Sequence record: PP942979.1
DNA length: 64,000 nucleotides
Direction: 5' to 3' (one strand)
The notes under the pieces are model-generated. The model was not told the DNA's origin. It saw only the letters and a list, made by a program, of their open reading frames with translations, and did no database searches. The translations under genes and the position numbers were made by a program. Position 1 is the stretch's first letter; each line of letters opens with the position of its first letter. Below, in pieces: positions 1,735 through 63,953 of this stretch.

Positions 1735-1743
1735 TATTTACAG
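1735..1743 (-). promoter_or_regulatory. CTGTAAATA single-box motif upstream of primase
   Basis: TATTTACAG on + strand, intergenic, 40 nt upstream of the primase ATG; recurrent motif. Confidence 0.55.
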
Positions 1744-1760
1744 ATATAGGGATAACTAGA

Positions 1761-2096
1761 ATGGGTAACCAGCATCGTTATGTAGCTTCGGTAGAACGTC
1801 GCTTTTATGGACCTCAATGGTTGGCGCTATGCGACCTGATTAAGGTAGAGCCTCAGACGTGTGGTGCGTTCGCAAAGAACGGCCATATGATGGGACTGAC
1901 TCTGCCTAAAGAGTTTGATGTTGAAGCTGCAACAAAGAGCCTGCGCCTTGTCTACGCAGTCAAGGAAGAAGACGTGGCCGTGCGCTGTTACCTGTTCGGT
2001 ACTCGCTACTACAAGTTCGTTTTCTTTGAACAAACAATTGCCGTAAGCGAGGATGATTATGAGAACGTTCGCAAACGTACCAGCGCGAGTCAATGA
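1761..2096 (+). CDS. Hypothetical protein
   Basis: 111-aa ORF divergent from primase. Confidence 0.75.
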   Translation: MGNQHRYVASVERRFYGPQWLALCDLIKVEPQTCGAFAKNGHMMGLTLPKEFDVEAATKSLRLVYAVKEEDVAVRCYLFGTRYYKFVFFEQTIAVSEDDYENVRKRTSASQ

Positions 2097-3144
2097 TACC
2101 CGCGCTCTGTCTCGCATAGGCAAGATGATCGATGCGGCACTCGACGTAAAAAATCAAGAGAAGCGCTGGCCAAAGAAACGCGTCAGCCCTTCAATGTTTC
2201 CTATCTGCGCGATTCAAGAAACTGCCAAACTGATTTACCAGAAGCACAACAAGTGCATGACAGGTGAGTCTGGTACGTTGCTGAACATCTTTGCGAAAGC
2301 AGGGACAGGGATGCACGAATCGTTACAGAACGCACTGGGTCATAGTGGTCAGATGGTTGGCCACTGGAAATGTACGAACGAAAAATGCCCTGAATACCCA
2401 AAGACCAAAGGTAAAATGGTTGACGGTAAATATAAGAAGGGCAAGTACACGCGAACTCGAAGCACGAACAATCGCTGTCCGACGTGTGATAAACCCATGG
2501 CTTATGCAGAACTAAAAGTCCTGTATAAGTCACTCAAGGGTTACGTCGATGGACTGATCGATAATCTTGATGGCACGTATAGCCTGATCGATTTGAAATC
2601 GACTATGGTGACCAAAGCTGCTGACGGATCTTTCTTCGTTAAGTATCACCGCTTCCAGATCGCAACATACGCATACCTGCTGAAAAAACGTTACGGTTAC
2701 AACATCGTGGACTATACCCTGGTTTACGTGCCACGCGACAACCCGAAGAAGTTTGTCGAAAAGACCTTTGTGTTTGACGAGGCAGAGTCGAAACGTGCCA
2801 AAGACTTTATGATGGAACAAATACGCGCATGGGATGCTGCGGTAAAATCGGCGCGCACTGGTGATCTGCTGCCAGCTATTAAACGAAAGCCGTGCAAGAG
2901 CGCTGAGTATTATTGGGACGAGTTCCACGGATATGACACATGCCCTTTTGTTGACTATTGCTTTATTCAATCACACATGATTGACTTCATGAAGAAGTTA
3001 GAGCAGCGAATCATGGCCAACCCCGACCTAACTTATATGGAAATTGTAAGCACTGGTCGGAAAACTCAACAACAAGGTCTGCTGCCGGACAAGCCGAAGA
3101 AGTCGCAACGTCCGAAGCATATCGTAAAAACATTTGAGCTATGA
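2059..3144 (+). CDS. Cas4/RecB-like PD-(D/E)XK exonuclease with Cys clusters
   Basis: SPSMFPIC...GTGMH, GYVDGL..IDLKS, FQIATYA, C-terminal PC...CPFVDYC; start uncertain (2053/2059/2125). Confidence 0.75.
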   Translation: MRTFANVPARVNDTRALSRIGKMIDAALDVKNQEKRWPKKRVSPSMFPICAIQETAKLIYQKHNKCMTGESGTLLNIFAKAGTGMHESLQNALGHSGQMVGHWKCTNEKCPEYPKTKGKMVDGKYKKGKYTRTRSTNNRCPTCDKPMAYAELKVLYKSLKGYVDGLIDNLDGTYSLIDLKSTMVTKAADGSFFVKYHRFQIATYAYLLKKRYGYNIVDYTLVYVPRDNPKKFVEKTFVFDEAESKRAKDFMMEQIRAWDAAVKSARTGDLLPAIKRKPCKSAEYYWDEFHGYDTCPFVDYCFIQSHMIDFMKKLEQRIMANPDLTYMEIVSTGRKTQQQGLLPDKPKKSQRPKHIVKTFEL

Positions 3145-3551
3145 GCATACAAAAAGATTATGAACGATCACTGCGCCGACTTAAGGAGTCTGTCTATCGC
3201 ACTGAACAGTTAGGTTATGTTGTGCCTCGCTGTGTTGATATTGTTCTCTCAAAGTTGAAGCCGCCTGAGACTGTATCGTCTAGGAAGTATCTGGTCATGC
3301 TGCTGTTGTTTAGCCAGACCTGTGACAACCTACGATCTGCTTTGACAATGAGAGAGCAACTGGTAGTCAAGATGGCCATACTCAGTCGCAAACACCCAAC
3401 GCCAGAGATTCAACGTCGCATCAGACGTCTTGAAGAACTGGTCAATAATCAGGATAGGAATATCGAAAGTCAGAGGCTGCTGCTTGATTACAGAGCAAAC
3501 GTCCTGCTGGATATCCTTGACGGGAAAGAACCCAACTCACGATACACTTGA
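3141..3551 (+). CDS. Hypothetical helical protein
   Basis: 136-aa ORF, ATGA overlap with the upstream stop. Confidence 0.75.
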   Translation: MSIQKDYERSLRRLKESVYRTEQLGYVVPRCVDIVLSKLKPPETVSSRKYLVMLLLFSQTCDNLRSALTMREQLVVKMAILSRKHPTPEIQRRIRRLEELVNNQDRNIESQRLLLDYRANVLLDILDGKEPNSRYT

Positions 3552-3558
3552 GGTACTC

Positions 3559-4035
3559 ATGGAAATTTATGTAAGCCTGAGTCAGGACTCTACAGACAAG
3601 AACCGCAACAAGGTATCGAGTCCGGAGTCCAACACCGGCCGCGTTGACGTGTCTGAATATGCGTCACTGGAAAAGAAACTGCGTCTGCGTGAAGAAGCTG
3701 TCGATAAAGAGAAACTCGCTCAGAAGGCTGGTGGCGGGGATTCTGTAAAGGGTAAGAAAGGCGCCAAGAAGAAAGGCGATGACAAACCCGAAGAAGACGA
3801 TACTGACATTGATACCGACACTGATACAGATGGAGGCGATGATGATACAGATGACTCTTCCGATGACAGTGGAGACGACTCCGATGGAGACGCTAAAGCT
3901 AAGAAAGGTGGAAAGAAATCTAACAAGTCTGGAGATGCGGACGACGAAGACGCAGAAGACCCTGACGCAGACGAACCCGAAAGTGATGACGGGGATGCAG
4001 ATGCTGAAAGCATTGATGACGAGGACCTCGAATAG
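3559..4035 (+). CDS. MEIYVSLS-family protein 1, D/K-rich low complexity, 158 aa
   Basis: GAGGT RBS then ATG at 3559; N-terminus shared with 8343 and 17572. Confidence 0.8.
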   Translation: MEIYVSLSQDSTDKNRNKVSSPESNTGRVDVSEYASLEKKLRLREEAVDKEKLAQKAGGGDSVKGKKGAKKKGDDKPEEDDTDIDTDTDTDGGDDDTDDSSDDSGDDSDGDAKAKKGGKKSNKSGDADDEDAEDPDADEPESDDGDADAESIDDEDLE

Positions 4036-5117: not shown

Positions 5118-5119
5118 TT

Positions 5120-5653: not shown

Positions 5654-5662
5654 GGAGATTGC

Positions 5663-6574: not shown

Positions 6575-6576
6575 TC

Positions 6577-7831: not shown

Positions 7832-8291
7832 AGGCGGACTGTGGCGCGTCTTCCCTGATTACGACTCAGAGGAGATGCTGCTCAAACTCGGTGCTGCTAT
7901 CGGTATCGACCGTGACAGTGATGACGTGCCTGATGAATTGCACGTTACTCTGGCTTACGATGAATCGAACCCTGACGTTGAAGCAGAGCAAAACGATGCG
8001 GGCCAGTTCTTTGGCACCGTTGCCTCTGCTGAATTGTTCGGCGAAGGTCAAGATAAGATTCTGGTGCTCGTACTCGAATCGCCTGACCTGCAACAGGAAC
8101 ACGCTCGTATTCATGCGTGTGGTGCTGCCAAGTTTGCGCACACTCCATACCGCCCGCATGTGACGTTACTCAAACATGCAAAAGACAGCCAAGCTGAATA
8201 TCTCAACCAGATCATTCAGCATCCGGGCCGTCCTCCAATCACTCTGCGCTTCATCGAAGAAGATCGCAAGGTGCTGGAGAAGCGTAGCTAA
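7824..8291 (+). CDS. 2H phosphoesterase, Acb1 (T4 gp57B)-like
   Basis: Two HxT motifs (LHVTLAY, YRPHVTL); LVLVLESPDLQQEH resembles Acb1 LVLVLDSEYLRCRH; similar size. Confidence 0.75.
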   Translation: MVKGGLWRVFPDYDSEEMLLKLGAAIGIDRDSDDVPDELHVTLAYDESNPDVEAEQNDAGQFFGTVASAELFGEGQDKILVLVLESPDLQQEHARIHACGAAKFAHTPYRPHVTLLKHAKDSQAEYLNQIIQHPGRPPITLRFIEEDRKVLEKRS

Positions 8292-8296
8292 AACCT

Positions 8297-8323
8297 AGCG
8301 GTGGCCTTGGGCTGCCGCTTTTG
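8297..8323 (+). terminator. Intrinsic terminator
   Basis: AGCGGTGGCC-TTG-GGCTGCCGCT then TTT. Confidence 0.65.
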
Positions 8324-8342
8324 TCATTCTGGAGAAATTTCT

Positions 8343-8660
8343 ATGGAAATCTATGTAAGCCTTTCCCATGAGATTCGCGTTGGTCGTCAAGACTCTGATC
8401 AAGCTGTTGCGCCTGAAACCACTGACGGCCAGAGACGTGCTGTTGAGCAACAAGAGAAAGAGCGTATTGTTGAAGAATACGGCATCGACACTCCCCAAGA
8501 GGAAATTGACGAAAAAGAGAAGGAACGCATTGAGCGCGAAGAGGAAAAGCGCGACGAAAACAAGACCAAAGCACCGGAAGATTTGGGTCAGCGTAAGCCG
8601 GAATCTGAACTCACTGGTTCTGAGATTCAAGACCAGCATGATAACCTGACAAAGATCTAG
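8343..8660 (+). CDS. MEIYVSLS-family protein 2, E/K-rich, 105 aa
   Basis: GGAG at 8331, ATG 8343. Confidence 0.8.
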   Translation: MEIYVSLSHEIRVGRQDSDQAVAPETTDGQRRAVEQQEKERIVEEYGIDTPQEEIDEKEKERIEREEEKRDENKTKAPEDLGQRKPESELTGSEIQDQHDNLTKI

Positions 8661-8664
8661 GAAT

Positions 8665-8673
8665 CTGTAAATA
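8665..8673 (+). promoter_or_regulatory. CTGTAAATA motif upstream of the sigma-like gene
   Basis: Intergenic, about 33 nt before ATG 8706. Confidence 0.55.
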
Positions 8674-8705
8674 AGAGTCAAAGCAACTAACAGGTGTATT
8701 TGACC

Positions 8706-9743
8706 ATGAACAATAAGTCGAATCTCACAGGCGGTCAGATAGAAAGCGTCATGGACACAATGCTTCATGACTGCCTGCGTGAGATTGTTGAGAACACGGA
8801 CATATTCGATGTTCAACTGACCTATCTGTTGAACATGATTACGTCGAATAAAAAGCGAAAGCCGTACAACGCCGAGACGCGTGACCGTGCTATCAGCCTT
8901 CTGATTAAGGCGCTGTCTGTGCCTCGCGATCAGAAAATGATTTATATCCAGGAGCTTAAAATGGAGCGTAACTTCATTTACGTCTTCCTGGAAAATGTAA
9001 TTAAGCGATACTACACAACGTATGTAGATCTCTATCGGGGTTTCATTTCGACGCAAGATGCTGTTAAGCGCGAAGCGTATTCGAAACGCCTGAATGCCTA
9101 CGTGAAGATGTTTGGGGCAGAGTCTCGCTCCAAACTCTTTATCGCGTTGTGTCGTTTGAACGATCTTCTGCCGCAGTTCATGGAATACTTCCACTCGGTA
9201 GTTGCTGACTTCTATAGACTATGCAGCAAGCAAACAAAATTTTATGTTGATACGAACCGCGGTAAGCTGTATGACAGCAAAGACGTGCGCCAGAACTTCC
9301 TGCGCAACGTTATCGTGGCTATCAACAAGTATGACTCCTCTCGCGGTGCGATTGTGAGTTATACGAAGTGGTGGATCTTGAACGCCCAAACCTGTAGTAG
9401 CAGCGAGCATGAATACGGCATCGCTTATACTATTCCCCAGACTCAACGTAAGAAACTGGCGACAGGTGAAGATACCACTTCTCTGAATTTCTCGGTAAGT
9501 CTCGATACTCCTGCGAACGAATCTGATGAAGGTGCGGACGCGTCCCTACATCAAAAAGTGAGTGACCATCATCACTTAGAAGATCACGTAGATAGTGAAA
9601 GACGTACTGAAAAACTGAGGCTGCTTATTAAGCGCGTAGACCCACTCGGCGTTGCACGATTGACGATGGATGTGGGTGAGGAGTTCGATAAGTTCGAACT
9701 TGATATGATGCGCAAACATATGCAGGCTCAAGGGCTAGCCTAA
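8706..9743 (+). CDS. Phage sigma70-family RNA polymerase sigma factor (regions 2-3; no evident 4.2 HTH)
   Basis: DVRQNFLRNVIVAINKYDSSRGAIVSYTKWWILNA aligns by eye with RpoD [36 protein letters not shown]; later YTIP and VSLDTP. Confidence 0.75.
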   Translation: MNNKSNLTGGQIESVMDTMLHDCLREIVENTDIFDVQLTYLLNMITSNKKRKPYNAETRDRAISLLIKALSVPRDQKMIYIQELKMERNFIYVFLENVIKRYYTTYVDLYRGFISTQDAVKREAYSKRLNAYVKMFGAESRSKLFIALCRLNDLLPQFMEYFHSVVADFYRLCSKQTKFYVDTNRGKLYDSKDVRQNFLRNVIVAINKYDSSRGAIVSYTKWWILNAQTCSSSEHEYGIAYTIPQTQRKKLATGEDTTSLNFSVSLDTPANESDEGADASLHQKVSDHHHLEDHVDSERRTEKLRLLIKRVDPLGVARLTMDVGEEFDKFELDMMRKHMQAQGLA

Positions 9744-9745
9744 AA

Positions 9746-9754
9746 CTGTAAACA
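9746..9754 (+). promoter_or_regulatory. CTGTAAACA motif upstream of SSB
   Basis: Intergenic, about 39 nt before ATG 9793. Confidence 0.5.
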
Positions 9755-9792
9755 GTGATCACATAAGCACAACTCAATATTGAGGAACAACA

Positions 9793-11055
9793 ATGGCACG
9801 TGGATTTGGTGACATTCAAGATAACAGCAAACGCGATAGTTTGCGTGAATCAGAAATCTTTGAAATCTTCCCGCTGGCGAAGAAAGCAAACGGCAACTGG
9901 GTTTCAATTCGTCTGTTAGATCTCGACCTGCTTCCGATTAAGAAGCACTGGATCAAGATCATGGGCGGGAAAGACAAAGACAAAGAGATCAAAATCCCGC
10001 GCATGTGCGTTAGCTTCGACCCGGACAATCAGAACAAACCTCTGAACGGTATGAAGTGTCCGTACTGCGGCATCGCTCACGGCAACGACGAATCTGGTGC
10101 ACCGGCGCAGTACGACTATAAGTGGTACGCACAGGCAATCATTCGTGACGAGCAGGCTGCTGCGCCGCGTAAAATGCCGAAGATGACCAAGAAAGAAGAG
10201 AAGTCAGGCAAGAAAGAAATGGGCAGCGAGTCCTGGACTCCTGTGCAGTGTATTCCTCTGTCTAACTCTCTGGCTGGTAAAATCCGCGAGCTGGGTGAAC
10301 GTAATATTCACACGGTCAAAGACAAAAAGTCTGGCAAGAAGTCTAAGCAGGCGTTTCAGGTTAACCATCCGAAGTATGGCTGCGATATTGAAATCAAATA
10401 CAACGCCAAAAAATCTCCGGCAGAGCGTTACACCATCGAACGTGGCGATCATACTCCACTGACGAAAGAAGAACAGGCGTACCTGACCTGGGACTTCGAC
10501 AACTGGAACGAAATCTACGACATGCTGGGCCGTCTGAACGAAGAAGCTGCTATGGCTGACTTCAAGAAGATGGACGTTATCGGCGTTAACACCAACGATT
10601 CTGACGATGGTGATGACGATGACGATGACGACGATGCTATGGCGCTGGGCCGCAAAAAGAAAGGCGGCAAAGCGGACAAGAAAAAACGTCGCAGCGATGA
10701 TGACGATGACGACGAAGATGACGACGATGATGAAGATGATCGTCCTTCCAAGAAGTCTAAAAAGGCGACCAAGTCTCGTAAGATGTTAGACGATGACGAG
10801 GACGATGACGACGAAGACGACGAAGATGATCGTCCGTCGAAGAAAAAGAAATCTTCGAAAGACAAAAAGTCCTCGAAGGTTAAGTCTAAGAAGTCTAAGA
10901 AGTCAGATGATGACGACGAAGACGACGAAGACGAAAAGCCTAAGAAGAAGAAAAAGTCTTCTGACAAGGTGAAGTCTTCCGTTAAGAAGAAAAAGAAATC
11001 TTCTGACGACGATGACGACGACGCGCCGAAGAAAAAGAAGAAAAAGAAAAAGTAA
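9793..11055 (+). CDS. gp32-like single-stranded DNA-binding protein with long D/K block tail
   Basis: IRLL...HW...C...CPYC...Y....I and GCDIEI...Y pattern of gp32-like SSBs; adjacent to recA. Confidence 0.6.
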   Translation: MARGFGDIQDNSKRDSLRESEIFEIFPLAKKANGNWVSIRLLDLDLLPIKKHWIKIMGGKDKDKEIKIPRMCVSFDPDNQNKPLNGMKCPYCGIAHGNDESGAPAQYDYKWYAQAIIRDEQAAAPRKMPKMTKKEEKSGKKEMGSESWTPVQCIPLSNSLAGKIRELGERNIHTVKDKKSGKKSKQAFQVNHPKYGCDIEIKYNAKKSPAERYTIERGDHTPLTKEEQAYLTWDFDNWNEIYDMLGRLNEEAAMADFKKMDVIGVNTNDSDDGDDDDDDDDAMALGRKKKGGKADKKKRRSDDDDDDEDDDDDEDDRPSKKSKKATKSRKMLDDDEDDDDEDDEDDRPSKKKKSSKDKKSSKVKSKKSKKSDDDDEDDEDEKPKKKKKSSDKVKSSVKKKKKSSDDDDDDAPKKKKKKKK

Positions 11056-11063
11056 TGTGAAAC

Positions 11064-11090
11064 AGGGTGGCTAACGCCGCCCTTTCTTTT
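11064..11090 (+). terminator. Intrinsic terminator
   Basis: AGGGTGGC-TAAC-GCCGCCCT then TTCTTTT. Confidence 0.7.
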
Positions 11091-11112
11091 CTCTAATCTG
11101 GACCACCCAACA

Positions 11113-13641
11113 ATGGCGAAAACGAACAACAAGGCTGAGAAGAAAGCTGAGAAGAAAGCTAAAGTCAAAGCCGGTAAGACAAAAGGCAAAGCAGTCGCCT
11201 CTGATGATATTGGCGGCGTAGAAGTAGCAGGCTTTGACCTTGGTAGTCTGATGGACGATGTGCTCGACGGCATCGAGAAGAAAACGAAAGTAAGCTCACA
11301 GGACGCAGCGCGACACGCACCTCGTATCTCTACTGGTGTGCTTGCGCTTGATATGTACCTTGACGGCGGCATCGTACCTGGCGGCTGGTATACTTTCAGC
11401 GGCGGTGAGCAGTCCTGTAAGTCAACAATGACCATGAGTATCATGGCGAGCCTGATTCGTCTGAAATACTCTGGCATTAGCGTAGTGTTCGACTACGAAG
11501 GTTCTACTGATGCTGACTACGTTGCTGGCCAGCTCAAAACGTTTGGCGTTACTGTTGACGCGAAGACCATCTTTGGTGTGCGTGACGGTGACGACGGCAA
11601 CTGGATTATCAAACCGCGTATTCGCTACTACGCGCCGGACAACGGTGAACGCTTCTTCGATTATATGTCGATGCTGCGTCGTCGTCTGCCTGATAAGATC
11701 GTCGATAAAGACGGTAGCTCGTACTACATCTTTGAGAACAACAAAGAGAACGCCAAGAAGGTTGCTGGCAAGTACGATAAGAAGTGGTTCAGCCGTAACA
11801 ACCAGTTCAAAGTTCCTGCGTCTGACGGTCACATGCAGGCTATGGTTATCGTTGACTCCTATCCTGCGATGATGCCGGATCAGGTCGATGATGACGATGG
11901 CTCAAAAGCAATGGCACTGCAAGCGCGTATGTTCTCTGACGGCATCAAACGTTTCCGTGGTGGTATGCGTCGTAAGATGATGACCATCGTTGGCGTTAAC
12001 CAGTTGCGTCAGAAACCTGCTGTGATGTTCGGTAGCCCTGAGTATGAGCCTGGAGGTGATGCGTTGAAGTTCTATTGCTTCGACCGTGACACTCTGATTC
12101 GTACCGACCACGGTGTGATGACTGCACCTGAGATCGCGCAACTGCTGAAAGATGGCGTTAAAGTTTGCGTTGAATCGTTCGATGGTTATCAGCAAATCAA
12201 TGGCGCGTGGAAAGTTGAAGACGCTCCGTTCCCAATCGAACTGTCTGCTGGAGGCCATAGCTACATCGGTAGCGCAGAGCACCGTCAGTTTGTTCTGGTA
12301 CCTGGCGTAACTGCTGATGGTACGAATGTGTTCTATCCTGAGTGGCGTACTCTGAACGAGATGGCTACCGGTGGGCACGAAGGTGTATACGCTGGTCTGC
12401 GTGTACCGCCTGTCAAAGAACTGAAACAGAACGTACCTGATGCGTTCGATGAAGCAAGCCAGCTTGTAAGCAGTCTGCTTGCTAACTGTGATCCGGTAAG
12501 CGTTCAACTGCCTCTGGCCACGCATGGTGATACTACCTATGCAGCGAACGTGCTGACCATTGACGTAGTTGGTGAGAGCACTGATTCCTCCGACTTCTCG
12601 TTCTGGGCTAAGAAGCTGCTGGACATTGGCGTATTCGCTTACGCTGATGAACGTGGTATTCACATGCCTGGTCTGAACAAGCATGAGCTGGAAGAAGCTG
12701 TTGCGCAGGATGCTGACAGTGCGTTCCGTGGTCTGTCTTATGCCGCCACCTGTCGTCAACGTCAAACGCAGATGCTGATTGCTATTGCTGATCGCTTCCC
12801 GGAACTGACTCGCTATGTTCTGGACTATCAGTTGCAGGTAGGCGAAGCTAAAATCTATCTGGCTCCAGAGAACGACTTTGCCGAAGCGCTTGACCTGATT
12901 CTGCATCGTGAGATTGACGGGTACGATGACCTGTACGATCTGCTGATGCAGCAACTGGCTTACGTTGAAGACTGGTACAACTTCGATAGCTCTATCTTGC
13001 CTGTGCCGTTCTCGCTGAAAGTGCTGAACAAAGAAGTTGAGTTCTGGGATGTTAACGTTGCCGAGACTTCTGTGGTTATCACCAACGGCTTCGTATCGCA
13101 TAATAGTGATGTGCGCGTTCGTCTGGCTTCTCGTGCAGTACCTGATGCAGGCTGGACAAAACTCAAAGACGCACCTGGTGTTGTCGGTGAGAAGTCTGTC
13201 ACTATTGAGGGCGGTACTGACCGCTATCGTTTCATTGCTGCTAAGACCATCAAGAACAAGATGGGTGGCATCCCGAACCAGCAGACTTGGTTGCGTCTGT
13301 GGGAAGCTGACGGTAATGGTGAAGCGCGCGGCTTCGACCCTGTGTTCGATACGTGGCACTATCTGAAAGTTCTCGGCCTGATCAACGGCACACGTAAGAG
13401 CTTTAAGATCAAAGCGCCTTGCCCTCTGGCTTCCGAAGTCAAGATGGACTGGGATGACTTCCGCACTCTTATCAACGGCACCAAGACACAAGTTGTCGAT
13501 GTGTGTAAGAAGCTGAAAGTCAAACCTGCCGGCCTGCGTCTGTGGTGCTTCAAGTTCGTGCAATCTGCGAAAGGCAAAGAAATGTTGAAAGCGTCTATCA
13601 GTAAGTCTGCGAAGACTTCTGGTGATGAAGACGACGAGTAA
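11113..13641 (+). CDS. recA: RecA/UvsX-like recombinase precursor containing an intein (842 aa; 499 aa after splicing)
   Basis: RISTGVLALD..L.GGI..G, Walker A GGEQSCKST, VIVDSY, QARMFS, VNQLR, VMFGSPE..PGGDALKFY, KNK. Confidence 0.9.
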   Translation: MAKTNNKAEKKAEKKAKVKAGKTKGKAVASDDIGGVEVAGFDLGSLMDDVLDGIEKKTKVSSQDAARHAPRISTGVLALDMYLDGGIVPGGWYTFSGGEQSCKSTMTMSIMASLIRLKYSGISVVFDYEGSTDADYVAGQLKTFGVTVDAKTIFGVRDGDDGNWIIKPRIRYYAPDNGERFFDYMSMLRRRLPDKIVDKDGSSYYIFENNKENAKKVAGKYDKKWFSRNNQFKVPASDGHMQAMVIVDSYPAMMPDQVDDDDGSKAMALQARMFSDGIKRFRGGMRRKMMTIVGVNQLRQKPAVMFGSPEYEPGGDALKFYCFDRDTLIRTDHGVMTAPEIAQLLKDGVKVCVESFDGYQQINGAWKVEDAPFPIELSAGGHSYIGSAEHRQFVLVPGVTADGTNVFYPEWRTLNEMATGGHEGVYAGLRVPPVKELKQNVPDAFDEASQLVSSLLANCDPVSVQLPLATHGDTTYAANVLTIDVVGESTDSSDFSFWAKKLLDIGVFAYADERGIHMPGLNKHELEEAVAQDADSAFRGLSYAATCRQRQTQMLIAIADRFPELTRYVLDYQLQVGEAKIYLAPENDFAEALDLILHREIDGYDDLYDLLMQQLAYVEDWYNFDSSILPVPFSLKVLNKEVEFWDVNVAETSVVITNGFVSHNSDVRVRLASRAVPDAGWTKLKDAPGVVGEKSVTIEGGTDRYRFIAAKTIKNKMGGIPNQQTWLRLWEADGNGEARGFDPVFDTWHYLKVLGLINGTRKSFKIKAPCPLASEVKMDWDDFRTLINGTKTQVVDVCKKLKVKPAGLRLWCFKFVQSAKGKEMLKASISKSAKTSGDEDDE
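12076..13104 (+). mobile_element. Intein, 343 aa, in RecA (ALKFY|CFDRDT...GFVSHN|SDVR)
   Basis: N-terminal Cys, block B SAEH, block F FWDVNV, terminal HN followed by Ser; removal restores the RecA motif. Confidence 0.9.
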
Positions 13642-13648
13642 TAAACGC

Positions 13649-13674
13649 GGGAGGGCTTCGGCTCTCCCTTTATT
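13649..13674 (+). terminator. Intrinsic terminator
   Basis: GGGAGGGC-TTCG-GCTCTCCC then TTTATT. Confidence 0.75.
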
Positions 13675-13690
13675 CGTGTAAGGAGAACCA

Positions 13691-14113
13691 ATGCGTACTC
13701 AAATCTTTACCGCTGATATTGTTAATCTGCAAACAACCGCAACTAACGAAGAAACAGGCGAAGAGATTGTCACACAAACAATCGTGCCTAACGTCGAAGG
13801 TGAACTGACAATCAGTGTTGGTGAACTGTCTCGTCTGTCTGAAAGCCTGAGCGAGCCTACCGACTCTGACTGCCGCCTGATTGTTATCGTGTCTCCGGAT
13901 GCAACGCCGGTCTTCTATGACGAAGCGCTGTCCAGTTACTTCGACCCAATCGAGCGTATTGCTGATATTCAGGCCGGCAACATCGGTACCATCAACGGTC
14001 TGCAAGTCATTCGCGGCCTGCAAGGCGATCACCCTTACGTTGCAGTTGTCGAAGTACGTGACGCTGATACCGTAGAGATCGTTCGCTACAACGCGTCTGT
14101 AGTAAAACTGTAA
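13691..14113 (+). CDS. Hypothetical protein
   Basis: AAGGAG RBS, 140 aa. Confidence 0.8.
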   Translation: MRTQIFTADIVNLQTTATNEETGEEIVTQTIVPNVEGELTISVGELSRLSESLSEPTDSDCRLIVIVSPDATPVFYDEALSSYFDPIERIADIQAGNIGTINGLQVIRGLQGDHPYVAVVEVRDADTVEIVRYNASVVKL

Positions 14114-14151
14114 ATACTAAGTGGGAGTCATACTCCCACGTTCTCTGGCTT

Positions 14152-14213: not shown

Positions 14214-14915
14214 ATGAAAAAGATTCAGACTAACATTTTACCCACCGAAGCCCTGCACGGACTAATCCACGGGTACGCGCGTCACGCCAAACAGCCTGAC
14301 GCTGCGAACAAGACGTTGTTCTATGTTGACGTCACTGAACGCAGTGCTAACGATGCACTGTACTCTATTCTTCGCCGCGATATTCCTTCAAACATCATCG
14401 GTACTGCCTACGATTGTCTTGTTGGTTTCCGTGGACATACAGCTCCTGCTCAACTTCCCATCGTGCTGTCGGAGAGTTTATATCACATAGGTTTGGATAG
14501 ACTCGCTAGTTCCCTGGCTGGAATTTTTGACGCTCTCGGCCGTACCGTGCATACTAACGACACGCAGATCACTATTTACGGTGAACCTGCAATTGAGAAA
14601 CTTCTGTCTATTGTTCGAGATACGCAGTTTAAGAGTTTCTTGGAAGTGTGCAACCCTGAACTTGCTTGTGGTGACTTCGACCTACAGTCCAATATCACTG
14701 TAGACAACTTTGTGTCTATGGCAATCGACCCGGACTTTGAAAAGCGTATTCCTGATAGCCCCGGGACCACCTATACATTTGGTCGTGACTTCATGTTTAT
14801 GCACTATGAAGACCTGCATAAAGTTATTCAGATGCTGCGTAAATATAAAAAGAATTGCACCCTGCATCCTGATTTGATGCGCTACTATTTCATGAACGTA
14901 ATCTGTAAATACTGA
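14214..14915 (+). CDS. Hypothetical protein
   Basis: AGGAG RBS, 233 aa. Confidence 0.8.
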   Translation: MKKIQTNILPTEALHGLIHGYARHAKQPDAANKTLFYVDVTERSANDALYSILRRDIPSNIIGTAYDCLVGFRGHTAPAQLPIVLSESLYHIGLDRLASSLAGIFDALGRTVHTNDTQITIYGEPAIEKLLSIVRDTQFKSFLEVCNPELACGDFDLQSNITVDNFVSMAIDPDFEKRIPDSPGTTYTFGRDFMFMHYEDLHKVIQMLRKYKKNCTLHPDLMRYYFMNVICKY

Positions 14916-16828: not shown

Positions 16829-16904
16829 GATTATTCTGAGTTTCGTCATTAATTTCTCCAAGTTAGCAAGAAGTGCTGACTAAATAGTTATTTGGAGAAA
16901 TAAC

Positions 16905-17522: not shown

Positions 17523-17571
17523 TATTTCTATGCTAATTTCATCTTGCATTCACTCGCACTGGAGAGACACT

Positions 17572-22087: not shown

Positions 22088-22138
22088 AAATAATAGGCTG
22101 AAATAGGTCTATATACGCACATGCGCCTGTGATACACT
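22088..22138 (+). promoter_or_regulatory. Box + extended -10 promoter
   Basis: AAATAATAGGCTGAAATA ... TGA-TACACT, same spacing as the other copies. Confidence 0.65.
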
Positions 22139-23970: not shown

Positions 23971-24459
23971 ATGAAAAACCAATATCTGATTCTTCGCATG
24001 AGCCCTGCTGATTTATACGACAATCAATTTCTGATGCGCGGCTTCAATCGCAAACGTATCGAAAACGTCATTGGCGTTATCGTTGTCGTGGACCACTCCG
24101 ACAGCATGTATCACCTGTCGCGTGTTCAAGTTGACCTGTTGCAGTCTGACACACAGCAGAACTGGGCAAGACTGAGTTGGTCTAGCATAGATCGTGAGAG
24201 CATTGACTTAGGCATGCGCAGCCTGCCGCCTGAGCTGGCTATTGCCATTCGCGCTATGCGAAACAATCGCATGTATCATACCGTCGATACAAAAATCCCT
24301 GTGGCGTTTCGTGATCGTCACACTAACTTCGCCTACACGACGAGCGCCGTACGCAAGATTGCTAACAGAGAAACGAAGTCACTCGACGACTTCACTGTAG
24401 AAGAAATCGTAGCGCACCTGAAACAGCGTCTTGGCGTTGAGATTGAAATCAAACTGTAA
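23971..24459 (+). CDS. Hypothetical protein
   Basis: 162-aa ORF. Confidence 0.75.
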   Translation: MKNQYLILRMSPADLYDNQFLMRGFNRKRIENVIGVIVVVDHSDSMYHLSRVQVDLLQSDTQQNWARLSWSSIDRESIDLGMRSLPPELAIAIRAMRNNRMYHTVDTKIPVAFRDRHTNFAYTTSAVRKIANRETKSLDDFTVEEIVAHLKQRLGVEIEIKL

Positions 24460-24506
24460 ACACTTAAGGCTCACACTGTGTGGGCCGTTTCTATTTGGAG
24501 AATGCT

Positions 24507-25023: not shown

Positions 25024-25032
25024 CTGTAAATA
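25024..25032 (+). promoter_or_regulatory. CTGTAAATA motif
   Basis: Intergenic, just after a terminator, about 32 nt before ATG 25064. Confidence 0.55.
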
Positions 25033-26905: not shown

Positions 26906-26950
26906 CTGGTCAAAATAGCCGTTCTTTTCAGTACCAGTTTATGTTATACT
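26900..26950 (+). promoter_or_regulatory. Box + extended -10 promoter
   Basis: AAATAACTGGTCAAAATAGCC ... TGT-TATACT. Confidence 0.8.
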
Positions 26951-36350: not shown

Positions 36351-36989
36351 GTGGACAGTATCATTCAATTCCTCATGGACGAGGACGAAGTGCAAGACGC
36401 ACTTACTGCATACCGCACTGACCCGACCGAAGCTAATAAGCGTCGTGTGGTTGAAACGATTCTTGCGGAACGCGAAACGGCAAAACGTATTGAGCCTGAT
36501 TTGCCTGTAGTTAAGCCTAAGCCTATTCATCGGTATGTGCTTATACCGAACGTCACCACTATCTATAAACAAAACGTGACGAGTACAGGGAAGGGCGGCA
36601 CTACAATGTCACGCAACATAGACCCGGAACGTAAGTCGATAGCTGCTCTTGCTAGACGCGCCGCTGATCACATTCATCAGCTTGGAGGTTCTGCTGCCTA
36701 CGTCCGTTTTGAATTTGACGAATGGCAGGCGCTGTTTGAGAACGAAGGCCACGTTGGCACAGTCAACATGTTCAACAACATCCAAGAGTACGACGATTTG
36801 GATAAGATAGCTGACGCGCTGAATACTTTTATTGCGCGACTTGGTAACGTCGATAGCCCTGAGTACGGAGCAAAACTTCTGCGTAAGATGTACGCTGTAG
36901 CACAGGGTAAGATTGATGACACTATCGGCAAGGCGATTATTCGCATGATAGATACGTCTGGCACCAAGAACGTACCCAGCTTACTGTAA
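36351..36989 (+). CDS. Hypothetical protein
   Basis: AAGGAG RBS, GTG start. Confidence 0.75.
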   Translation: MDSIIQFLMDEDEVQDALTAYRTDPTEANKRRVVETILAERETAKRIEPDLPVVKPKPIHRYVLIPNVTTIYKQNVTSTGKGGTTMSRNIDPERKSIAALARRAADHIHQLGGSAAYVRFEFDEWQALFENEGHVGTVNMFNNIQEYDDLDKIADALNTFIARLGNVDSPEYGAKLLRKMYAVAQGKIDDTIGKAIIRMIDTSGTKNVPSLL

Positions 36990-37021
36990 AGAACAGACAG
37001 TCGAATAACGAGGATAATAAA

Positions 37022-39946: not shown

Positions 39947-39979
39947 GGCTTGTTTTCGAAGGTTGCCCTATGATACACT
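39928..39979 (+). promoter_or_regulatory. Box + extended -10 promoter
   Basis: AAATAACTGGACAAAATAAGG ... TGA-TACACT. Confidence 0.8.
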
Positions 39980-41056: not shown

Positions 41057-41285
41057 TGCGACCCATAAGTATTACGGCGAAGCATACGAAGGTACGTGGC
41101 TGAAAGAGATCGCTCTCAACGGCCAGCAAGTTACCATCGCTGAGTTTCCAAACTTCAACGCTGCCAAAGAGTGCGCTGACAAGCTGCATGAGGTTTGCGA
41201 TATAGGGTGGATCGTCTACAACGCTTTTTCCGAAAGAGCGATGTACGATACCCGTACAGAGCAAGGCGAGTCTGTAAATACATAG
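41034..41285 (+). CDS. Hypothetical protein
   Basis: GGAGG RBS, 83 aa. Confidence 0.7.
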   Translation: MARYHVFSATHKYYGEAYEGTWLKEIALNGQQVTIAEFPNFNAAKECADKLHEVCDIGWIVYNAFSERAMYDTRTEQGESVNT

Positions 41286-43356: not shown

Positions 43357-43401
43357 CTGGTCAAAATAGCGCTTCTTCGTGAGGCGCTTTTCTGCTATAA
43401 T
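43351..43401 (+). promoter_or_regulatory. Box + extended -10 promoter, with a terminator-like hairpin in the spacer
   Basis: AAATAACTGGTCAAAATAGCG ... TGC-TATAAT; AGCGCTTC/GAGGCGCT-TTT at 43368-43391. Confidence 0.8.
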
Positions 43402-48379: not shown

Positions 48380-48424
48380 TCGGCTGAAATAACCATGCTG
48401 TCTAAAGTGCGTCTATGCTACAAT
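48374..48424 (+). promoter_or_regulatory. Box + extended -10 promoter
   Basis: AAATAATCGGCTGAAATAACC ... TGC-TACAAT. Confidence 0.7.
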
Positions 48425-52348: not shown

Positions 52349-52399
52349 AAATAACTGGTCAAAATGACGGTAGTATCTGAAACCGCATTATGATATACT
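52349..52399 (+). promoter_or_regulatory. Box + extended -10 promoter
   Basis: AAATAACTGGTCAAAATGACG ... TGA-TATACT. Confidence 0.8.
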
Positions 52400-54523: not shown

Positions 54524-54574
54524 AAAAATCTGGACAAAATGACGGTTGTCTCAAAACAGCGTCCGTGTTAGAAT
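54524..54574 (+). promoter_or_regulatory. Box + extended -10 promoter (first of a tandem pair)
   Basis: AAAAATCTGGACAAAATGACG, TTGTCT 17 nt before TAGAAT, TG extension. Confidence 0.8.
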
Positions 54575-54580
54575 ATAGAT

Positions 54581-54769: not shown

Positions 54770-54821
54770 AGAAAACTGGACAAAATCGTGGTTGTTATCT
54801 GACGGCCACCTGAGCTATACT
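54770..54821 (+). promoter_or_regulatory. Box + -10 promoter (second of the pair)
   Basis: AGAAAACTGGACAAAATCGTG, TTGTTA, TATACT. Confidence 0.75.
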
Positions 54822-54880
54822 ATATGCAGACGCATTGAGCGTCGCAAACAACATATCACTTATACTGAGGAGTATTAAAC

Positions 54881-59977: not shown

Positions 59978-62900
59978 ATGTCTAATAATAACCTGGGCGC
60001 TGCTGCATCATTTGGTACCGAGACGCAAAAGCAAATCGCTAACGAACAGCGCCGCGCTAATTCGTCTGAGAGCGGTCATGTGAACAAATGCACCATCGTT
60101 GTTCTGACTGCGTTGAACGCGCATAACCGTTTCTCGTATCTGAGCGCGGACGAACAACTCTGTGAAAAGCCGATTGAAGGCAAAGTAATGGATCGTCTGC
60201 CCAACCTGATCGAACGCGCATCTGGCGCGTCGACCGACCAGAACAGCGCGTACTACATTCTGCATCCGAACAACGGCGTACCGACTCGCATCGACGAGCG
60301 TATCAAAGTGGGTGAAGGTGACGCGGTCATTATTTCGTATACTGTAAATAAAGCAGTGTCAGAGATGCACGGCAGTTTGTCTCTCGCATTGTTCAGTGCG
60401 GGCGAAAGCGACCTTGCAGACCTGGCCGCCGAGTTTGGTATTCACGCCATCTCGATTGTTGAAGAAAGCAAAGCTGGTGGTTATATTCAAGCGCTCGCCG
60501 CACAGGTAGAAGCTCTGAATATTGTAAATATCACAAGCATTGATGAAACTGACGGCGCTCTCGATAAAGCAGTAATCGACTACAGCGCGTTGCCGGCCAA
60601 TCCTGTTACTGTGCTGTCCGGCGCTGTGCGTACTTTCATCATGCAAACTATTAGCAGCGAAATCGTTGCTGCAATTCCAAATAACGGAGAACTGAACGTG
60701 AAACAACCTACCAACTCAACGCCTGTCGATCTGAACGAAGACTTCGACGCAGAAGACGAAGTTGTTGATCAGCAGGACGGCGGTGAAGACGAAGCTGCGG
60801 TCGGCACGGACCTGTTTGGCTACAAGGCTGAAACGCTGAGTGTCGAGCAAATGTCCGAAGCGCTCGAAGCTATCGACTACGATCTGTCTGCTATGGATGA
60901 AGACGGCATCCGCGAATCGTTCGAAACTGAGCAGGCCATCTGGCTGGCAAAATCTGATGACGCCGCTGCCGACGACGCGGACGACGCCGAAGATGAAGAA
61001 GAGGAAGAAGAGGACGACGAAGACGAAGAAGGCTTCGACGCTGTTCAGTTCCTCGCTTCTCTGCTGATGGCCGAAGACTTCGACCGCGATGCGCTGAAAG
61101 TTCTGGTCCGTACTCAAGACCTGAAAGTAATGAAGTCGGACACTGTTGAAACTCTGTCTGCTAAACTGCTGGAGCTGGTCGAAGGCGCAACCGAAGAAGA
61201 GATGTTTGAACTGATCAACACCTTCGTCGGCGCGCTGCAAGAGCGTGAAATCGAATGCCCGAACATGCTGGCAACTATCGCTGAGGAAGAAGACAGCGAA
61301 GAAGAAGATGCCGATGAAGAAGACGGCGAAGACGAAGAGGAAGATTCTGAGGAGGAGGAAGATGAAGACTCCGAAGAAGAAACCGAAGAAGAAGACGGTG
61401 ACGAACTGCAAGACCAGATCGAAGCTGTTACCGACCCGCTCGACTACTTCCAGTTCCCGGGCGGCGCTCTGTCTGCTGAACAACGCATGGCTGCTGTTGA
61501 AGCTATGGGCGAAAACGTTGAAGGTCTGACTATCGTGCAGGTAATGAAAGCGTTCACTCGCATTCAGGGCCAGACCAACGAAATCGCGGTAGAAGAAGAC
61601 GCCGAGCTGTCTAACGTTGAACAACTGACTGCGCTGCTGGGCCAGTACGACGAAGCGACCGTGCAGCACGTTGCTGAAAGCCTGGGCATCCTCGTTGACG
61701 AATGCGAAACCGTTGACGAAATGATCGAAGCGATTGCAAACGGCGGTAACGAAGATGACTTCGCTGCTGTTGAAGAAATCGCAACCAACTACGGTGTTGA
61801 CCTGTCCGAAGTTGCTGACGGCGAGGAGCTGGACTTTGTTGACGCTCTGCTGGCAGTGCTGCCGTCGTTCCTGAACGATGATGAAGTTGGCGAGCAGGAC
61901 GAAGAAGAAGACAGCGAAGATGAAGAAGACGCTGACGACGAAGATGAAGATGAAGTCGAAGCTGCTGGTGATGCCACTGCTGAGAACGATCATCTGAAAT
62001 TCGTTAAGTCCGTTGATACCTCCAATCGCGTCGGCCCGATGCTGACTGTCGATATGGACCAAACGCTGATCATCAACTTCACTCTGACCGACGGTGATAC
62101 TTACGCACCGATTGAAAGCGAACTGTCTGACATTAACGGCTTCAACTACCGCTACCCGTTCAACCTGGGCAAAGCTGGTAAAGCACCGGGCGCGATGCAC
62201 CTGCCGGCGCAGTCTCTGCTGGATATCATTGAGCGCACCAGCACCACGCGCTTCATGGCTAACCCGGCAACGTTCGATGTTGCAGCCTGGGCGGAAAGCC
62301 TTGAAGCAACTCTGGAAGATGAAATCGCATCCTCTCTGTATGCCGGTCGCATCGAAGAAGGTCTGGACCCTACCGAAGCCGGTCTGATTGTCGGTGACTT
62401 CATCGACGACGAAGAAATGCAGCAGGCAAGCGAACTCGGTTACATCGACGCTGACCAGTTCGACGAGCTGCAAGGTGATCATCTGCCGATTGCTGGTCTG
62501 TACAGTGCTAAGTCTCGCGTTCGTCCGGTGCAGGTTGATACTGCTCACGTCGCGCTGCACACCACTGTGATGAACGTCGCTGTTCCTGGCTTCTGGGGCG
62601 ACTCTGATGTTTCTCTGCTGGTGCAGGCTGCTGTTAACCGCGTTATCGCTCTGGCCGGTACTGTTGAAAACATCCGTGTGTACGCTGGCTTCACGTTCGA
62701 ATCTGCCGCACTGCTGAACAACGACCGCCTGTTTGCTGCGCTGACCGCTCTGCGCACCATGGAAGGCGTACAGTCTTACTCTGCTGCTGACGCTGCAAAC
62801 TTCGACGACGCCGAAGACGTAATCGAAGTAGCAAGTGCGCTGGACACCCGCGACCTGCCGCTGTCTATTCTGTCTGGTGGTCTGGCTGCTGCAACGTTCG

Positions 62901-62986
62901 ATAACGGCGGTGACCTGACTGTGCTGGTACAGTGTTCTCCGGAAGACGAAGAGTCCGAAGAAGAAGACGAAGGCGACGACGAGTAA
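59978..62986 (+). CDS. 1002-aa extremely acidic protein with repeated short helical modules
   Basis: GAGGAG RBS; D/E runs alternate with helical modules; terminator follows. Confidence 0.85.
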   Translation: MSNNNLGAAASFGTETQKQIANEQRRANSSESGHVNKCTIVVLTALNAHNRFSYLSADEQLCEKPIEGKVMDRLPNLIERASGASTDQNSAYYILHPNNGVPTRIDERIKVGEGDAVIISYTVNKAVSEMHGSLSLALFSAGESDLADLAAEFGIHAISIVEESKAGGYIQALAAQVEALNIVNITSIDETDGALDKAVIDYSALPANPVTVLSGAVRTFIMQTISSEIVAAIPNNGELNVKQPTNSTPVDLNEDFDAEDEVVDQQDGGEDEAAVGTDLFGYKAETLSVEQMSEALEAIDYDLSAMDEDGIRESFETEQAIWLAKSDDAAADDADDAEDEEEEEEDDEDEEGFDAVQFLASLLMAEDFDRDALKVLVRTQDLKVMKSDTVETLSAKLLELVEGATEEEMFELINTFVGALQEREIECPNMLATIAEEEDSEEEDADEEDGEDEEEDSEEEEDEDSEEETEEEDGDELQDQIEAVTDPLDYFQFPGGALSAEQRMAAVEAMGENVEGLTIVQVMKAFTRIQGQTNEIAVEEDAELSNVEQLTALLGQYDEATVQHVAESLGILVDECETVDEMIEAIANGGNEDDFAAVEEIATNYGVDLSEVADGEELDFVDALLAVLPSFLNDDEVGEQDEEEDSEDEEDADDEDEDEVEAAGDATAENDHLKFVKSVDTSNRVGPMLTVDMDQTLIINFTLTDGDTYAPIESELSDINGFNYRYPFNLGKAGKAPGAMHLPAQSLLDIIERTSTTRFMANPATFDVAAWAESLEATLEDEIASSLYAGRIEEGLDPTEAGLIVGDFIDDEEMQQASELGYIDADQFDELQGDHLPIAGLYSAKSRVRPVQVDTAHVALHTTVMNVAVPGFWGDSDVSLLVQAAVNRVIALAGTVENIRVYAGFTFESAALLNNDRLFAALTALRTMEGVQSYSAADAANFDDAEDVIEVASALDTRDLPLSILSGGLAAATFDNGGDLTVLVQCSPEDEESEEEDEGDDE

Positions 62987-62998
62987 TATCGTCTGATT

Positions 62999-63028
62999 GA
63001 GTGGCTCGAAAGGGCCACTCGCTTTTCT
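62999..63028 (+). terminator. Intrinsic terminator
   Basis: GAGTGGCTC-GAAA-GGGCCACTC then GCTTTTCT. Confidence 0.75.
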
Positions 63029-63043
63029 TGGGGATCTGTAAAC

Positions 63044-63871
63044 ATGACACAAGAAGTAGACCACGGAGCTAACATCGTCCGGATGATTGGTGAGCGTGAC
63101 GAAAAAATCCATACGCTTACTAGCGAGCTTGCAGAAGCCGTAGGTGATAAGAAAGACGTGGAACACGTTTTAGAGGATGAGGTTCACAGCAACACAGTGT
63201 TGCGTGTCGCCCTTCAACGTAAGGTTCGCCAACACGCCACTGAAATCGCTCTGCGTGATGAACGCATTCGTGAAGTTACTGGATTCTGCAACGAGCAGAC
63301 CGAAGAAGTTCGCGCTCTGAAAGCTGAACTCGAATCTGTAAAGAGTAAGCAAGAAGCGGCAAACCCGCTGCCTTTTGCTCTGCATATGATAATGTGTGCT
63401 GGCATCAACCACTACTACACAATCGTTATGCAACTCGCACACGGTACTGTAAATCGTGAAACGAATCGGGTAGCGCGAGACCTTGCCGAGCAGAACAAGT
63501 TGGACACGGTAGGTAAACAGCCTTCGCTGTACCGCTCTGTTGCAATGTATTGCTCTGCTGCTGGCACTGACGTACCAACGGGTGCAACGTTGCGTGAATC
63601 GCTTAAAGCTCACATCGAAGCAAATATTGACCTGTTCTTGAAAGACCCGCAATTCGAAATCTCTCGCTCAATGTTACGCCTTGTGTGGGAAGCGAATAAG
63701 AAAGCGGCTCATATGGGTTTCGGTGCGAATAACATCTGCCGCTCATTCAACTGGATGCCTGCCGCAGAAGTTGGCAGTCTTGAAACGCTGGATGATGAAG
63801 ACGACTACGAAGAATTGTTCTGCGAGTCGCTTCAAACAATTTGTTTCGATTTGATTAATCATAGCTTTTAA
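63044..63871 (+). CDS. Hypothetical protein with N-terminal coiled coil
   Basis: 275-aa ORF; heptad-like N-terminal third. Confidence 0.75.
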   Translation: MTQEVDHGANIVRMIGERDEKIHTLTSELAEAVGDKKDVEHVLEDEVHSNTVLRVALQRKVRQHATEIALRDERIREVTGFCNEQTEEVRALKAELESVKSKQEAANPLPFALHMIMCAGINHYYTIVMQLAHGTVNRETNRVARDLAEQNKLDTVGKQPSLYRSVAMYCSAAGTDVPTGATLRESLKAHIEANIDLFLKDPQFEISRSMLRLVWEANKKAAHMGFGANNICRSFNWMPAAEVGSLETLDDEDDYEELFCESLQTICFDLINHSF

Positions 63872-63875
63872 TAAT

Positions 63876-63953
63876 CTGTAAAAGTTACCTGTAATCGAAA
63901 CTGTAAACACTAATTGAAGTTCGAACCGAGCGACAAGCTCACATTTATAAATA
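63876..63953 (+). promoter_or_regulatory. Cluster of three CTGTAA boxes plus TATAAATA
   Basis: CTGTAA at 63876, 63889 and 63901; TATAAATA at 63946; intergenic. Confidence 0.5.

Follow-up and report, generated by a model that had tools for sequence, protein, structure and literature searches.

Introduction

Jumbo phages without an RNA polymerase (RNAP) of their own must re-programme the host enzyme, and phage sigma cascades acting on −10-type boxes are, as a kind, already known. The late promoters of bacteriophage T4 (TATAAATA) are read by gp55 together with gp33 and the sliding clamp, and its middle promoters work by appropriation of the host sigma by AsiA and MotA. SPO1 deploys two phage sigmas (gp28 for middle and gp33/34 for late genes) across three promoter classes, all bipartite (−35 and −10), with the first phage sigma produced from host-type promoters and the gene for the later sigma placed behind the earlier promoter class. 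GT-containing, A-rich −10 elements, such as GTCAAA of Escherichia coli sigma-E or CGTA of Bacillus subtilis sigma-W, are typical of extracytoplasmic function (ECF) sigmas, and sigmas with a region 1.2 recognize −10 elements of the TAnnnT type (T(−12), A(−11), T(−7)). To our knowledge, no transcription programme has been worked out for the phages Lu11 and PaBG, for Alexandravirus, Yoloswagvirus, Salmondvirus and Sasquatchvirus, or for their distant 200-kb relatives. Here, we analyse a stretch of 64,000 nucleotides (nt) from sequence record PP942979.1 (hereinafter, the window, to which positions refer unless the record is named) and a short box recurring in it, CTGTAAA(T/C)A, as a candidate phage-specific promoter.

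The window is identical to positions 186001–250000 of PP942979.1, as determined by exact matching of the concatenated record, and a megablast search with window positions 8000–14000 returned Erwinia phage phB78 at 100% identity. phB78 (261,824 bp; genus Alexandravirus; host Erwinia amylovora) is organized into long single-strand gene blocks, and 94% of its genome is coding. Its annotation includes no phage RNAP and a single ‘RNA polymerase sigma factor’, SHZ78_230, which is encoded within the window. We propose, with a probability of roughly 60%, that the box is the single-box promoter of a middle regulon and forms part of a cascade of two phage sigma factors.

Results and discussion

Enrichment and strand bias of the box

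CTGTAAAYA occurs 11 times in the window, compared with a mean of 1.06 and a maximum of 4 in dinucleotide-preserving shuffles of the same DNA, none of which (0/100) reached 11. When synonymous codons were instead permuted gene by gene and intergenic runs shuffled, 1.19 ± 0.98 copies (maximum 4) were obtained for the window and 5.5 ± 2.2 (maximum 12) for the complete phB78 genome, in which 33 nine-mers are observed. All 33 lie on the coding strand of their own gene block. The shorter core, CTGTAAA, is co-directional with the local genes in 61 of its 62 genomic copies, and the sole antisense copy resides within the stem of a terminator; because about 16 antisense copies would be expected, the box appears to be avoided on the wrong strand. 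Despite the coding density of the genome, 23 of the 33 nine-mers lie at least partly outside called genes. Furthermore, only five of the 33 (two of the 11 in the window) use CTG-TAA as a leucine codon followed by a stop, so that the enrichment is not due to stop-codon context.

A preliminary description of the window, made from the sequence alone, had listed these 11 copies, estimated that about one would arise by chance and remarked that they follow gene direction, mostly at gene boundaries. The coordinates and strands proved correct throughout, as did the caveats that the copies at 14108 and 24454 overlap Leu-stop codons and that the one at 60342 is intragenic, and both shuffles reproduce the chance estimate. 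It had also suggested a codon-aware control and conceded that the case would fail if the enrichment vanished once stop-codon context was controlled for; the enrichment persists. An origin of the repeat by chance, or as an artefact of codon or stop context, could draw on the Leu-stop copies and on the approximately 10 of 33 nine-mers located inside genes, but is confronted with the codon-aware shuffle, the 61:1 strand bias and the retention of the box amid otherwise diverged intergenic DNA of related phages. These controls rule it out, and we assign it a negligible probability.

Anatomy and placement

Alignment of the sites yields the consensus AAWCTGTAAA(T/C)A, in which the informative 5′ flank is confined to the three bases adjoining the box (A-A-T/A). 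The columns from −50 to −4 carry no information, bearing out the earlier remark that the box has no −35 partner. At 26 of 42 sites, an A is found seven bases past the last A of the box, and this preferred A is likely to be the transcription start; with TAAATA taken as −12 to −7, it would be +1. Many copies are located 5–15 nt 3′ of hairpin-plus-T-run terminators and 17–100 nt 5′ of start codons, with an overall range of box-to-start-codon distances of 8 to 135 nt.

The box differs from the promoters read by host sigma-70 (TTGACA-17-TATAAT or TGnTATAAT) in that T at −7 is absent, A or C/A being found there. It also departs from ECF promoters, which combine an AAC-type −35 with a (C)GT-type −10 about 16–17 bp apart: the −10 contains GT but there is no conserved −35. 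What it does share, as a lone −10-type box (TGTAAATA/TGTAAACA) without a −35, is the form of the T4 late promoters. Collectively, these features support the view that CTGTAAA(T/C)A acts as a lone, −10-like, phage-specific element without a −35 partner, and we consider it very probable that the box is a promoter.

The strand specificity and the location upstream of start codons would equally suit an element that functions at the RNA level, either for processing or as a translational operator. However, the many copies situated just past intrinsic terminators would be missing from the upstream transcript, the spacing to the start codon is highly variable, and the near-absence of antisense copies fits the avoidance of spurious promoters; hence, a role in RNA seems very improbable.

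Genes preceded by the box

According to the PP942979.1 annotation and the genome-wide list of CTGTAAA sites, the genes 3′ of the box include those for the primase, the window sigma, SSB, NAD-dependent ligase, a DNA polymerase fragment, Pol I and the clamp loader, as well as a recombination endonuclease, an HNH endonuclease, Dam methylase, ParB, dCMP deaminase, NTP pyrophosphohydrolase and several proteins of unknown function. Nearly all virion and lysis genes are devoid of CTGTAAA boxes and carry TAATTT instead, unlike what would be expected of a T4-type late promoter. Judged from the genes that it precedes, the box class is a middle one, associated with replication, recombination and nucleotide metabolism, rather than a late one. 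Thus, of the ‘middle/late’ class proposed previously, the middle part holds, whereas the late part falls to a different motif, (G)CTAATTT, considered below.

Conservation in related phages

Phage Y3, the relative used for nucleotide alignment (Yoloswag and JA29 being too diverged at most window sites), has an identical box at all eight alignable sites, namely, seven of the eleven nine-mers and one relaxed core, within stretches that are 71%–78% identical to the window. In Yoloswag and JA29, the box is found before the primase, sigma and SSB genes amid otherwise diverged spacers. At greater distances, Pol I is preceded by a terminator followed by (C/G)TGTAAA or GGTAAAT in all six phages compared (phB78, PaBG, Lu11, Peetri, GR7B and PhiXhv), whose proteins are only ~25%–45% identical, and in most of the six a box also precedes the SSB, primase or clamp loader gene. 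The core ranks among the most enriched upstream words in Peetri (as GGTAAATA or TGTAAATA), GR7B (as (C/T)TGTAAAT) and PhiXhv (as CCTGTAAATA); in PaBG, the box takes the form AAACTGT(A/G)AA. The box is co-directional with the genes in each of the eight genomes considered (phB78, Yoloswag, JA29, PaBG, Lu11, Peetri, GR7B and PhiXhv-12), and the hosts of the phages sharing it belong to Erwinia, Dickeya, Pseudomonas, Vibrio and Xanthomonas.

The genome of Pseudomonas phage Lu11 was reportedly published by Adriaenssens and colleagues in 2012 (J Virol 86:6369). Its GenBank record (JQ768459.1) contains 16-base features, for example CTGTAAATACATAGTA, labelled ‘putative middle/late promoter’, one of which is located before the SSB gene. 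Consequently, the box is not new as a predicted promoter. The Lu11 features and the phB78 box have in common the 8-base core CTGTAAAT after AAA and the place before the SSB gene. With its A-rich 5′ flank and its gene-oriented, intergenic placement, and by recurring at the same positions before SSB, Pol I and primase orthologues of related phages, the phB78 box agrees with a motif of the Lu11 type, and Lu11 encodes homologues of both sigma-like proteins described below. The Lu11 annotation further includes a downstream GTA, which ends at the same position as the A preferred in phB78, the likely start; phB78 retains only this A. The Lu11 label is a computational prediction to which no factor is assigned and in which middle and late promoters are lumped together, whereas in phB78 the late box is resolved separately. 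In the literature searched (the Lu11 genome paper falls outside this scope), we found no description of the box in Erwinia or Dickeya phages, no factor assigned to it and no split between middle and late boxes. New here are the family-wide conservation, the separation into three promoter classes and the two-sigma cascade hypothesis. The distribution across phages is best explained if the box is a middle-regulon promoter common to the whole Lu11/PaBG-like family of RNAP-less jumbo phages.

Putative late and early promoter classes

Comparison of k-mers between oriented intergenic DNA and the whole phB78 genome revealed a second oriented box, (C)GCTAATTT. Its core, TAATTT, is depleted genome-wide (49 copies versus 96 ± 9 in shuffles) and co-directional with the genes in 44 of the 49 cases. 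Twenty-six copies are found 23–67 nt before start codons, mostly of virion and lysis genes, including both tail sheath genes and the genes for a virion structural protein, the PAAR protein and the endolysin, as well as a small gene that immediately precedes the portal gene. Seven nucleotides past this box G is preferred (15/26), the same spacing as for the CTGTAAA box. Related phages carry TAATTT (PaBG, Lu11, Yoloswag and JA29) or CTAATT (Peetri and GR7B), and (G)CTAATTT likely represents the late promoter class.

A strict TTGACA-N16-18-TATAAT scan of phB78 recovered almost no co-oriented intergenic host promoters. The extended −10 motif TGnTA(T/C)A(A/C)T, in turn, is present in ~11 intergenic regions, all on the plus strand at 208–257 kb of the record and mostly inside the window, where it precedes clusters of small genes of unknown function. 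In most of these regions, (CAAATAA)CTGG(T/A)CAAAAT precedes the TG by ~25 nt, with a hairpin located just downstream. Unlike the CTGTAAA box, this class conforms to the definition of a host sigma-70 promoter, and its members are likely to be host-type early promoters. A similar palindrome, CTGGTCAA, is present before a host-type promoter in PaBG.

Two sigma-like proteins

The window sigma, SHZ78_230, belongs to PHROG 17569 and has a weak match to Pfam Sigma70_r2 and to no other Pfam family. It has 229 relatives, many encoded on contigs of 200–310 kb; the profile of the family matches region 2 of SigA in the correct register, with retention of the Tyr and the Trp-Trp pair and with Asn and Thr at the positions of sigma-70 Gln437 and Thr440. 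In the AlphaFold2 model (pLDDT 80.6), residues 3–243 superpose on residues 111–446 of sigma-70 with Z scores up to 15.6 and comprise region 1.2, a shortened non-conserved region and region 2, whereas residues 231–289 are disordered. The small three-helix C-terminal domain yielded no alignment with region 3 or 4, except for one low-ranked, loose match. The description of this protein as region-4-less is therefore reasonable. The analogy with T4 gp55, drawn in the preliminary description, stands as a way of working (TGTAAATA compared with TATAAATA) but is doubtful as family membership; no match to the gp55 family was found for the protein, the sole Pfam hit of which is the weak one to Sigma70_r2. 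The sigma, SSB and RecA/UvsX genes retain this order even in the 200-kb phages Peetri, PhiXhv-12 and GR7B, which infect Pseudomonas putida, Xanthomonas and Vibrio and the sigmas of which are only ~25% identical to that of the window.

A second possible sigma, gp112, has been noted in PaBG by HHpred (PMC7412058). Its phB78 counterpart is SHZ78_321 (record positions 260234–261373, outside the window; 379 amino acids (aa)), annotated as a hypothetical protein; the equivalence follows from synteny (topoisomerase, this gene, a small gene, DnaB) and a shared PHROG family. SHZ78_321 has no sequence-level Pfam match, and its fold was judged from a modelled homologue sharing 92% identity (pLDDT 83.6). 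Residues 146–379 of this model align with the full-length ECF sigmas sigma-H, sigma-L and sigma-E at Z ~10, the sigma-2 part fits at 2.3–2.9 Å, and sigma factors account for each of the 27 best matches. The C-terminal 235 residues of SHZ78_321 are thus predicted to fold like a complete ECF sigma, with sigma-2 and sigma-4 domains. Profile-profile comparison of the two sigma families was not significant. Profile searches detected both proteins in all eight genomes, with E-values in the distant phages of 1e-38 to 1e-52 for the SHZ78_230 family and 1e-10 to 1e-15 for the SHZ78_321 family, which rules out the impression from tblastn that the distant phages lack the second sigma; accordingly, the phyletic pattern cannot pair boxes with sigmas.

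Promoters of the sigma genes

The only promoter visible for SHZ78_230 is the box itself. A terminator hairpin is located ~370 nt upstream of the gene (~8297–8322), and the 3 kb preceding the gene yielded no host-type promoter. A CTGTAAA box heads the window-sigma operon in phB78, Yoloswag, JA29, Y3, Peetri and GR7B. Conversely, a host-type promoter stands at the head of the SHZ78_321 operon in each of five phages, namely, phB78 (TGATATAAT, adjoining a copy of the CTGTAAA box), Yoloswag, PaBG (TTGACT...TGCTACAAT), GR7B (a perfect TTGACA-17-TATAAT) and Peetri (TTGACA-17-CATAAT). On sequence logic, this arrangement is that of an SPO1-like cascade, with the first sigma behind host-type promoters and the later sigma behind the first phage-specific class. 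As a separate observation, the strong terminator (8290–8342) separates the gene for a 2H-phosphoesterase/‘RNA ligase’ from the small gene SHZ78_229, which has no promoter in front of it and hence must rely on terminator read-through.

Which factor reads the box

In the cascade that we propose, host core RNAP equipped with a phage-encoded sigma would melt the DNA at the box and start ~7 nt downstream, preferably at A. Host sigma-70 would read the extended −10 early promoters, one of which would head the operon of the ECF-like sigma SHZ78_321. The latter would then read the CTGTAAATA boxes, including the one before the window sigma gene, and the window sigma, sigma-70-like and region-4-less, would finally read the late box (G)CTAATTT before the virion and lysis genes. 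The ECF-like sigma is the more economical reader of the middle box because its operon sits behind host-type promoters in five phages, and an early-made sigma can activate the box for the first time, which the window sigma cannot do if it is made only from the box. The type of motif points the same way: the GT-containing, A-rich −10 of the middle box is of a kind typical of ECF sigmas, and the late box, in turn, matches the window sigma because TAATTT retains all three bases, T(−12), A(−11) and T(−7), that are read by sigmas with region 1.2. On these grounds, SHZ78_321 is, in our estimation, the probable reader, and the box at 8665 is probably the promoter of the window sigma gene rather than a promoter read by its product. 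The link to the 8706 protein, favoured in the preliminary description, is correspondingly weak.

The opposite assignment, in which the region-4-less window sigma reads CTGTAAATA as T4 gp55 reads TATAAATA, would turn the box before its own gene into a positive feedback and leave the late box, or something else, to the ECF-like protein. A sigma-2 domain without detectable region 3 or 4 suits a lone −10 box, a single base separates the box from its T4 late counterpart, hardly any variation is seen in the GTAAAT core within the phage family, and the SHZ78_230 family is better conserved in distant phages than the SHZ78_321 family. Nevertheless, the sole promoter of the gene is the box, behind a terminator, leaving no visible early source of the protein in any of the six phages in which the box heads its operon; an early-expressed ECF-like sigma would need to drive the virion genes directly; and the box serves replication rather than late genes. 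We therefore regard this scheme as rather unlikely, and the window sigma as the reader of the box, under whatever scheme, as a doubtful but not negligible candidate.

It is improbable that the reader is something other than the two phage sigmas. The form of this idea that we weighed, redirection of the host sigma-70 holoenzyme by an early phage protein along the lines of AsiA and MotA, draws on the many early proteins of unknown function and on the DksA/TraR-like and XRE-like proteins encoded by the phage. Yet no TAnnnT −10 is found at a fixed distance 3′ of the box, only the single preferred A, and the T at −7 on which sigma-70 depends is missing from the box; moreover, two conserved sigma genes and two conserved non-host boxes are more simply explained as one box per sigma. 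Appropriation of sigma-70 thus appears highly improbable.

Several points weigh against SHZ78_321 as the reader and the box as a promoter driven by it. One would ordinarily expect an ECF-like sigma equipped with sigma-4 to depend on a −35, which the box does not have; the similarity to the T4 late box points to a region-4-less reader, the architecture of the window sigma and not of the ECF-like one; and the SHZ78_321 operon is also provided with a CTGTAAATA box, placing both sigma genes behind the box. The sigma-like fold of SHZ78_321 derives from the model of a homologue only, at a Z score (~10) that is moderate for a helical protein. Among the public sequencing runs searched, the phage appeared only in metagenome and metatranscriptome contigs and no infection RNA-seq was found, and comparison of four such contig sets with window positions 8001–14000 returned fragments of relatives without usable 5′ ends, one contig beginning at 8664 included. 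Finally, some copies look less like working promoters: those at 14108 and 24454, with hairpins directly 3′, and that at 63036, which overlaps the annotated ATG of SHZ78_310.

Comparison with known systems

Taking the two-sigma cascade as the working scheme, the box and the T4 late promoters are both lone, A/T-rich −10-type boxes of 8–9 bp without a −35, one base apart (TGTAAATA in the phages considered here), kept across a whole phage family and read, as proposed for phB78, by host core polymerase with a phage sigma; they differ in that the phB78 box serves replication genes. The parallel with SPO1 extends to two phage sigmas, three promoter classes and the order in which the sigma genes are placed behind them, but both phage-specific classes in phB78 are single boxes, and no relationship of the phB78 proteins to the SPO1 sigmas is detectable. 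With ECF systems, the box shares the GT-containing, A-rich −10 and a candidate reader with a predicted ECF-like sigma-2 plus sigma-4 fold, in the absence of an AAC-type −35; in addition, SHZ78_321 has an extra N-terminal region of ~145 aa and no Pfam match.

More tentatively, and with slightly less than even confidence, we suggest that the whole family of RNAP-less jumbo phages shares a three-step, two-sigma cascade built entirely on single-box promoters. If so, an ECF-like sigma would read the lone CTGTAAATA without a −35 despite its sigma-4 domain, and both boxes would have been kept among phages with only ~25%–35% protein identity. The known range of ECF-type promoter recognition would widen accordingly. 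Together, the box, the late box and the two sigma genes constitute a directly testable cascade, and the box offers a ready operon map for fire-blight biocontrol phages along with templates for in vitro work.

Individual copies of the box and other features

The coordinates of the boxes and of the other features in the window are collected in Table 1.

Table 1. Boxes, candidate promoters and the sigma gene in the 64,000-nt window of phB78.
Feature	Window position	Strand	Context	Conservation
Box CTGTAAATA	1735–1743	−	39 nt upstream of primase start (1695)	Same place in Y3, Yoloswag, JA29; box also before primase in Lu11, PhiXhv
Box CTGTAAATA	8665–8673	+	32 nt upstream of sigma gene ATG (8706)	Kept in Y3, Yoloswag, JA29
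Phage sigma factor SHZ78_230, 345 aa	8706–9743	+	Annotation, profile match, AlphaFold2 model; box at 8665 upstream	
Box CTGTAAACA	9746–9754	+	38 nt upstream of SSB gene (9793)	Box before SSB also in Y3, Yoloswag, JA29, Lu11 (annotated promoter there), Peetri, GR7B
Box CTGTAAATA	14108–14116	+	Overlaps Leu-stop of SHZ78_233; 97 nt before SHZ78_234	
Box CTGTAAATA	14903–14911	+	Final 13 nt of SHZ78_234; 100 nt before SHZ78_235	
Box CTGTAAACA	24454–24462	+	Overlaps Leu-stop of SHZ78_244; 44 nt before SHZ78_245	
Box CTGTAAATA	25024–25032	+	Directly 3′ of terminator T-run; 31 nt before SHZ78_247	Kept in Y3
Relaxed box CTGTAAAga	36984–36990	+	31 nt before SHZ78_272; overlaps stop of SHZ78_271	
Box CTGTAAATA	41272–41280	+	End of SHZ78_280; 77 nt before SHZ78_281	Kept in Y3
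Box CTGTAAATA	60342–60350	+	Within SHZ78_309; internal promoter or coding coincidence	Identical in Y3, coding flanks likewise identical
Box CTGTAAACA	63036–63044	+	Just 3′ of terminator; final A of the box doubles as first base of the annotated SHZ78_310 ATG	
Tandem boxes CTGTAAAag (63876) and CTGTAAACA (63901)	63876–63909	+	57 nt before SHZ78_311	63901 copy kept in Y3
Putative late box (C)GCTAATTT	17533–17539, 1716–1721, 16850–16855	+	Oriented TAATTT copies	
Early promoter candidates	22096–22138, 26906–26950, 39934–39979, 43357–43401	+	Extended −10 and upstream CTGG(T/A)CAAAAT	
Early promoter candidates	48382–48424, 52355–52399, 54530–54580, 54776–54830	+	Extended −10 and upstream CTGG(T/A)CAAAAT	

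The copies at 14108 and 24454 are followed, 4–5 nt past the box, by stable 8-bp hairpins (14117–14140 and 24467–24496), the second of which is terminator-like, with a U-run, so that the activity of the 24454 copy is uncertain. A start 7 nt past either box would fall at the foot of the 5′ arm of the hairpin; the hairpin could thereby be weakened, and box-initiated transcripts could escape a terminator that halts read-through from upstream. With regard to the copy at 63036, the start of SHZ78_310 (63036–63046) may be misannotated, the true start being a downstream ATG, or else the copy may serve a downstream start. Outside the window, two unannotated gaps in the record, at 82465–83800 (1.3 kb) and 161573–162179 (0.6 kb), each start with a CTGTAAATA box and may harbour unannotated genes or RNAs.

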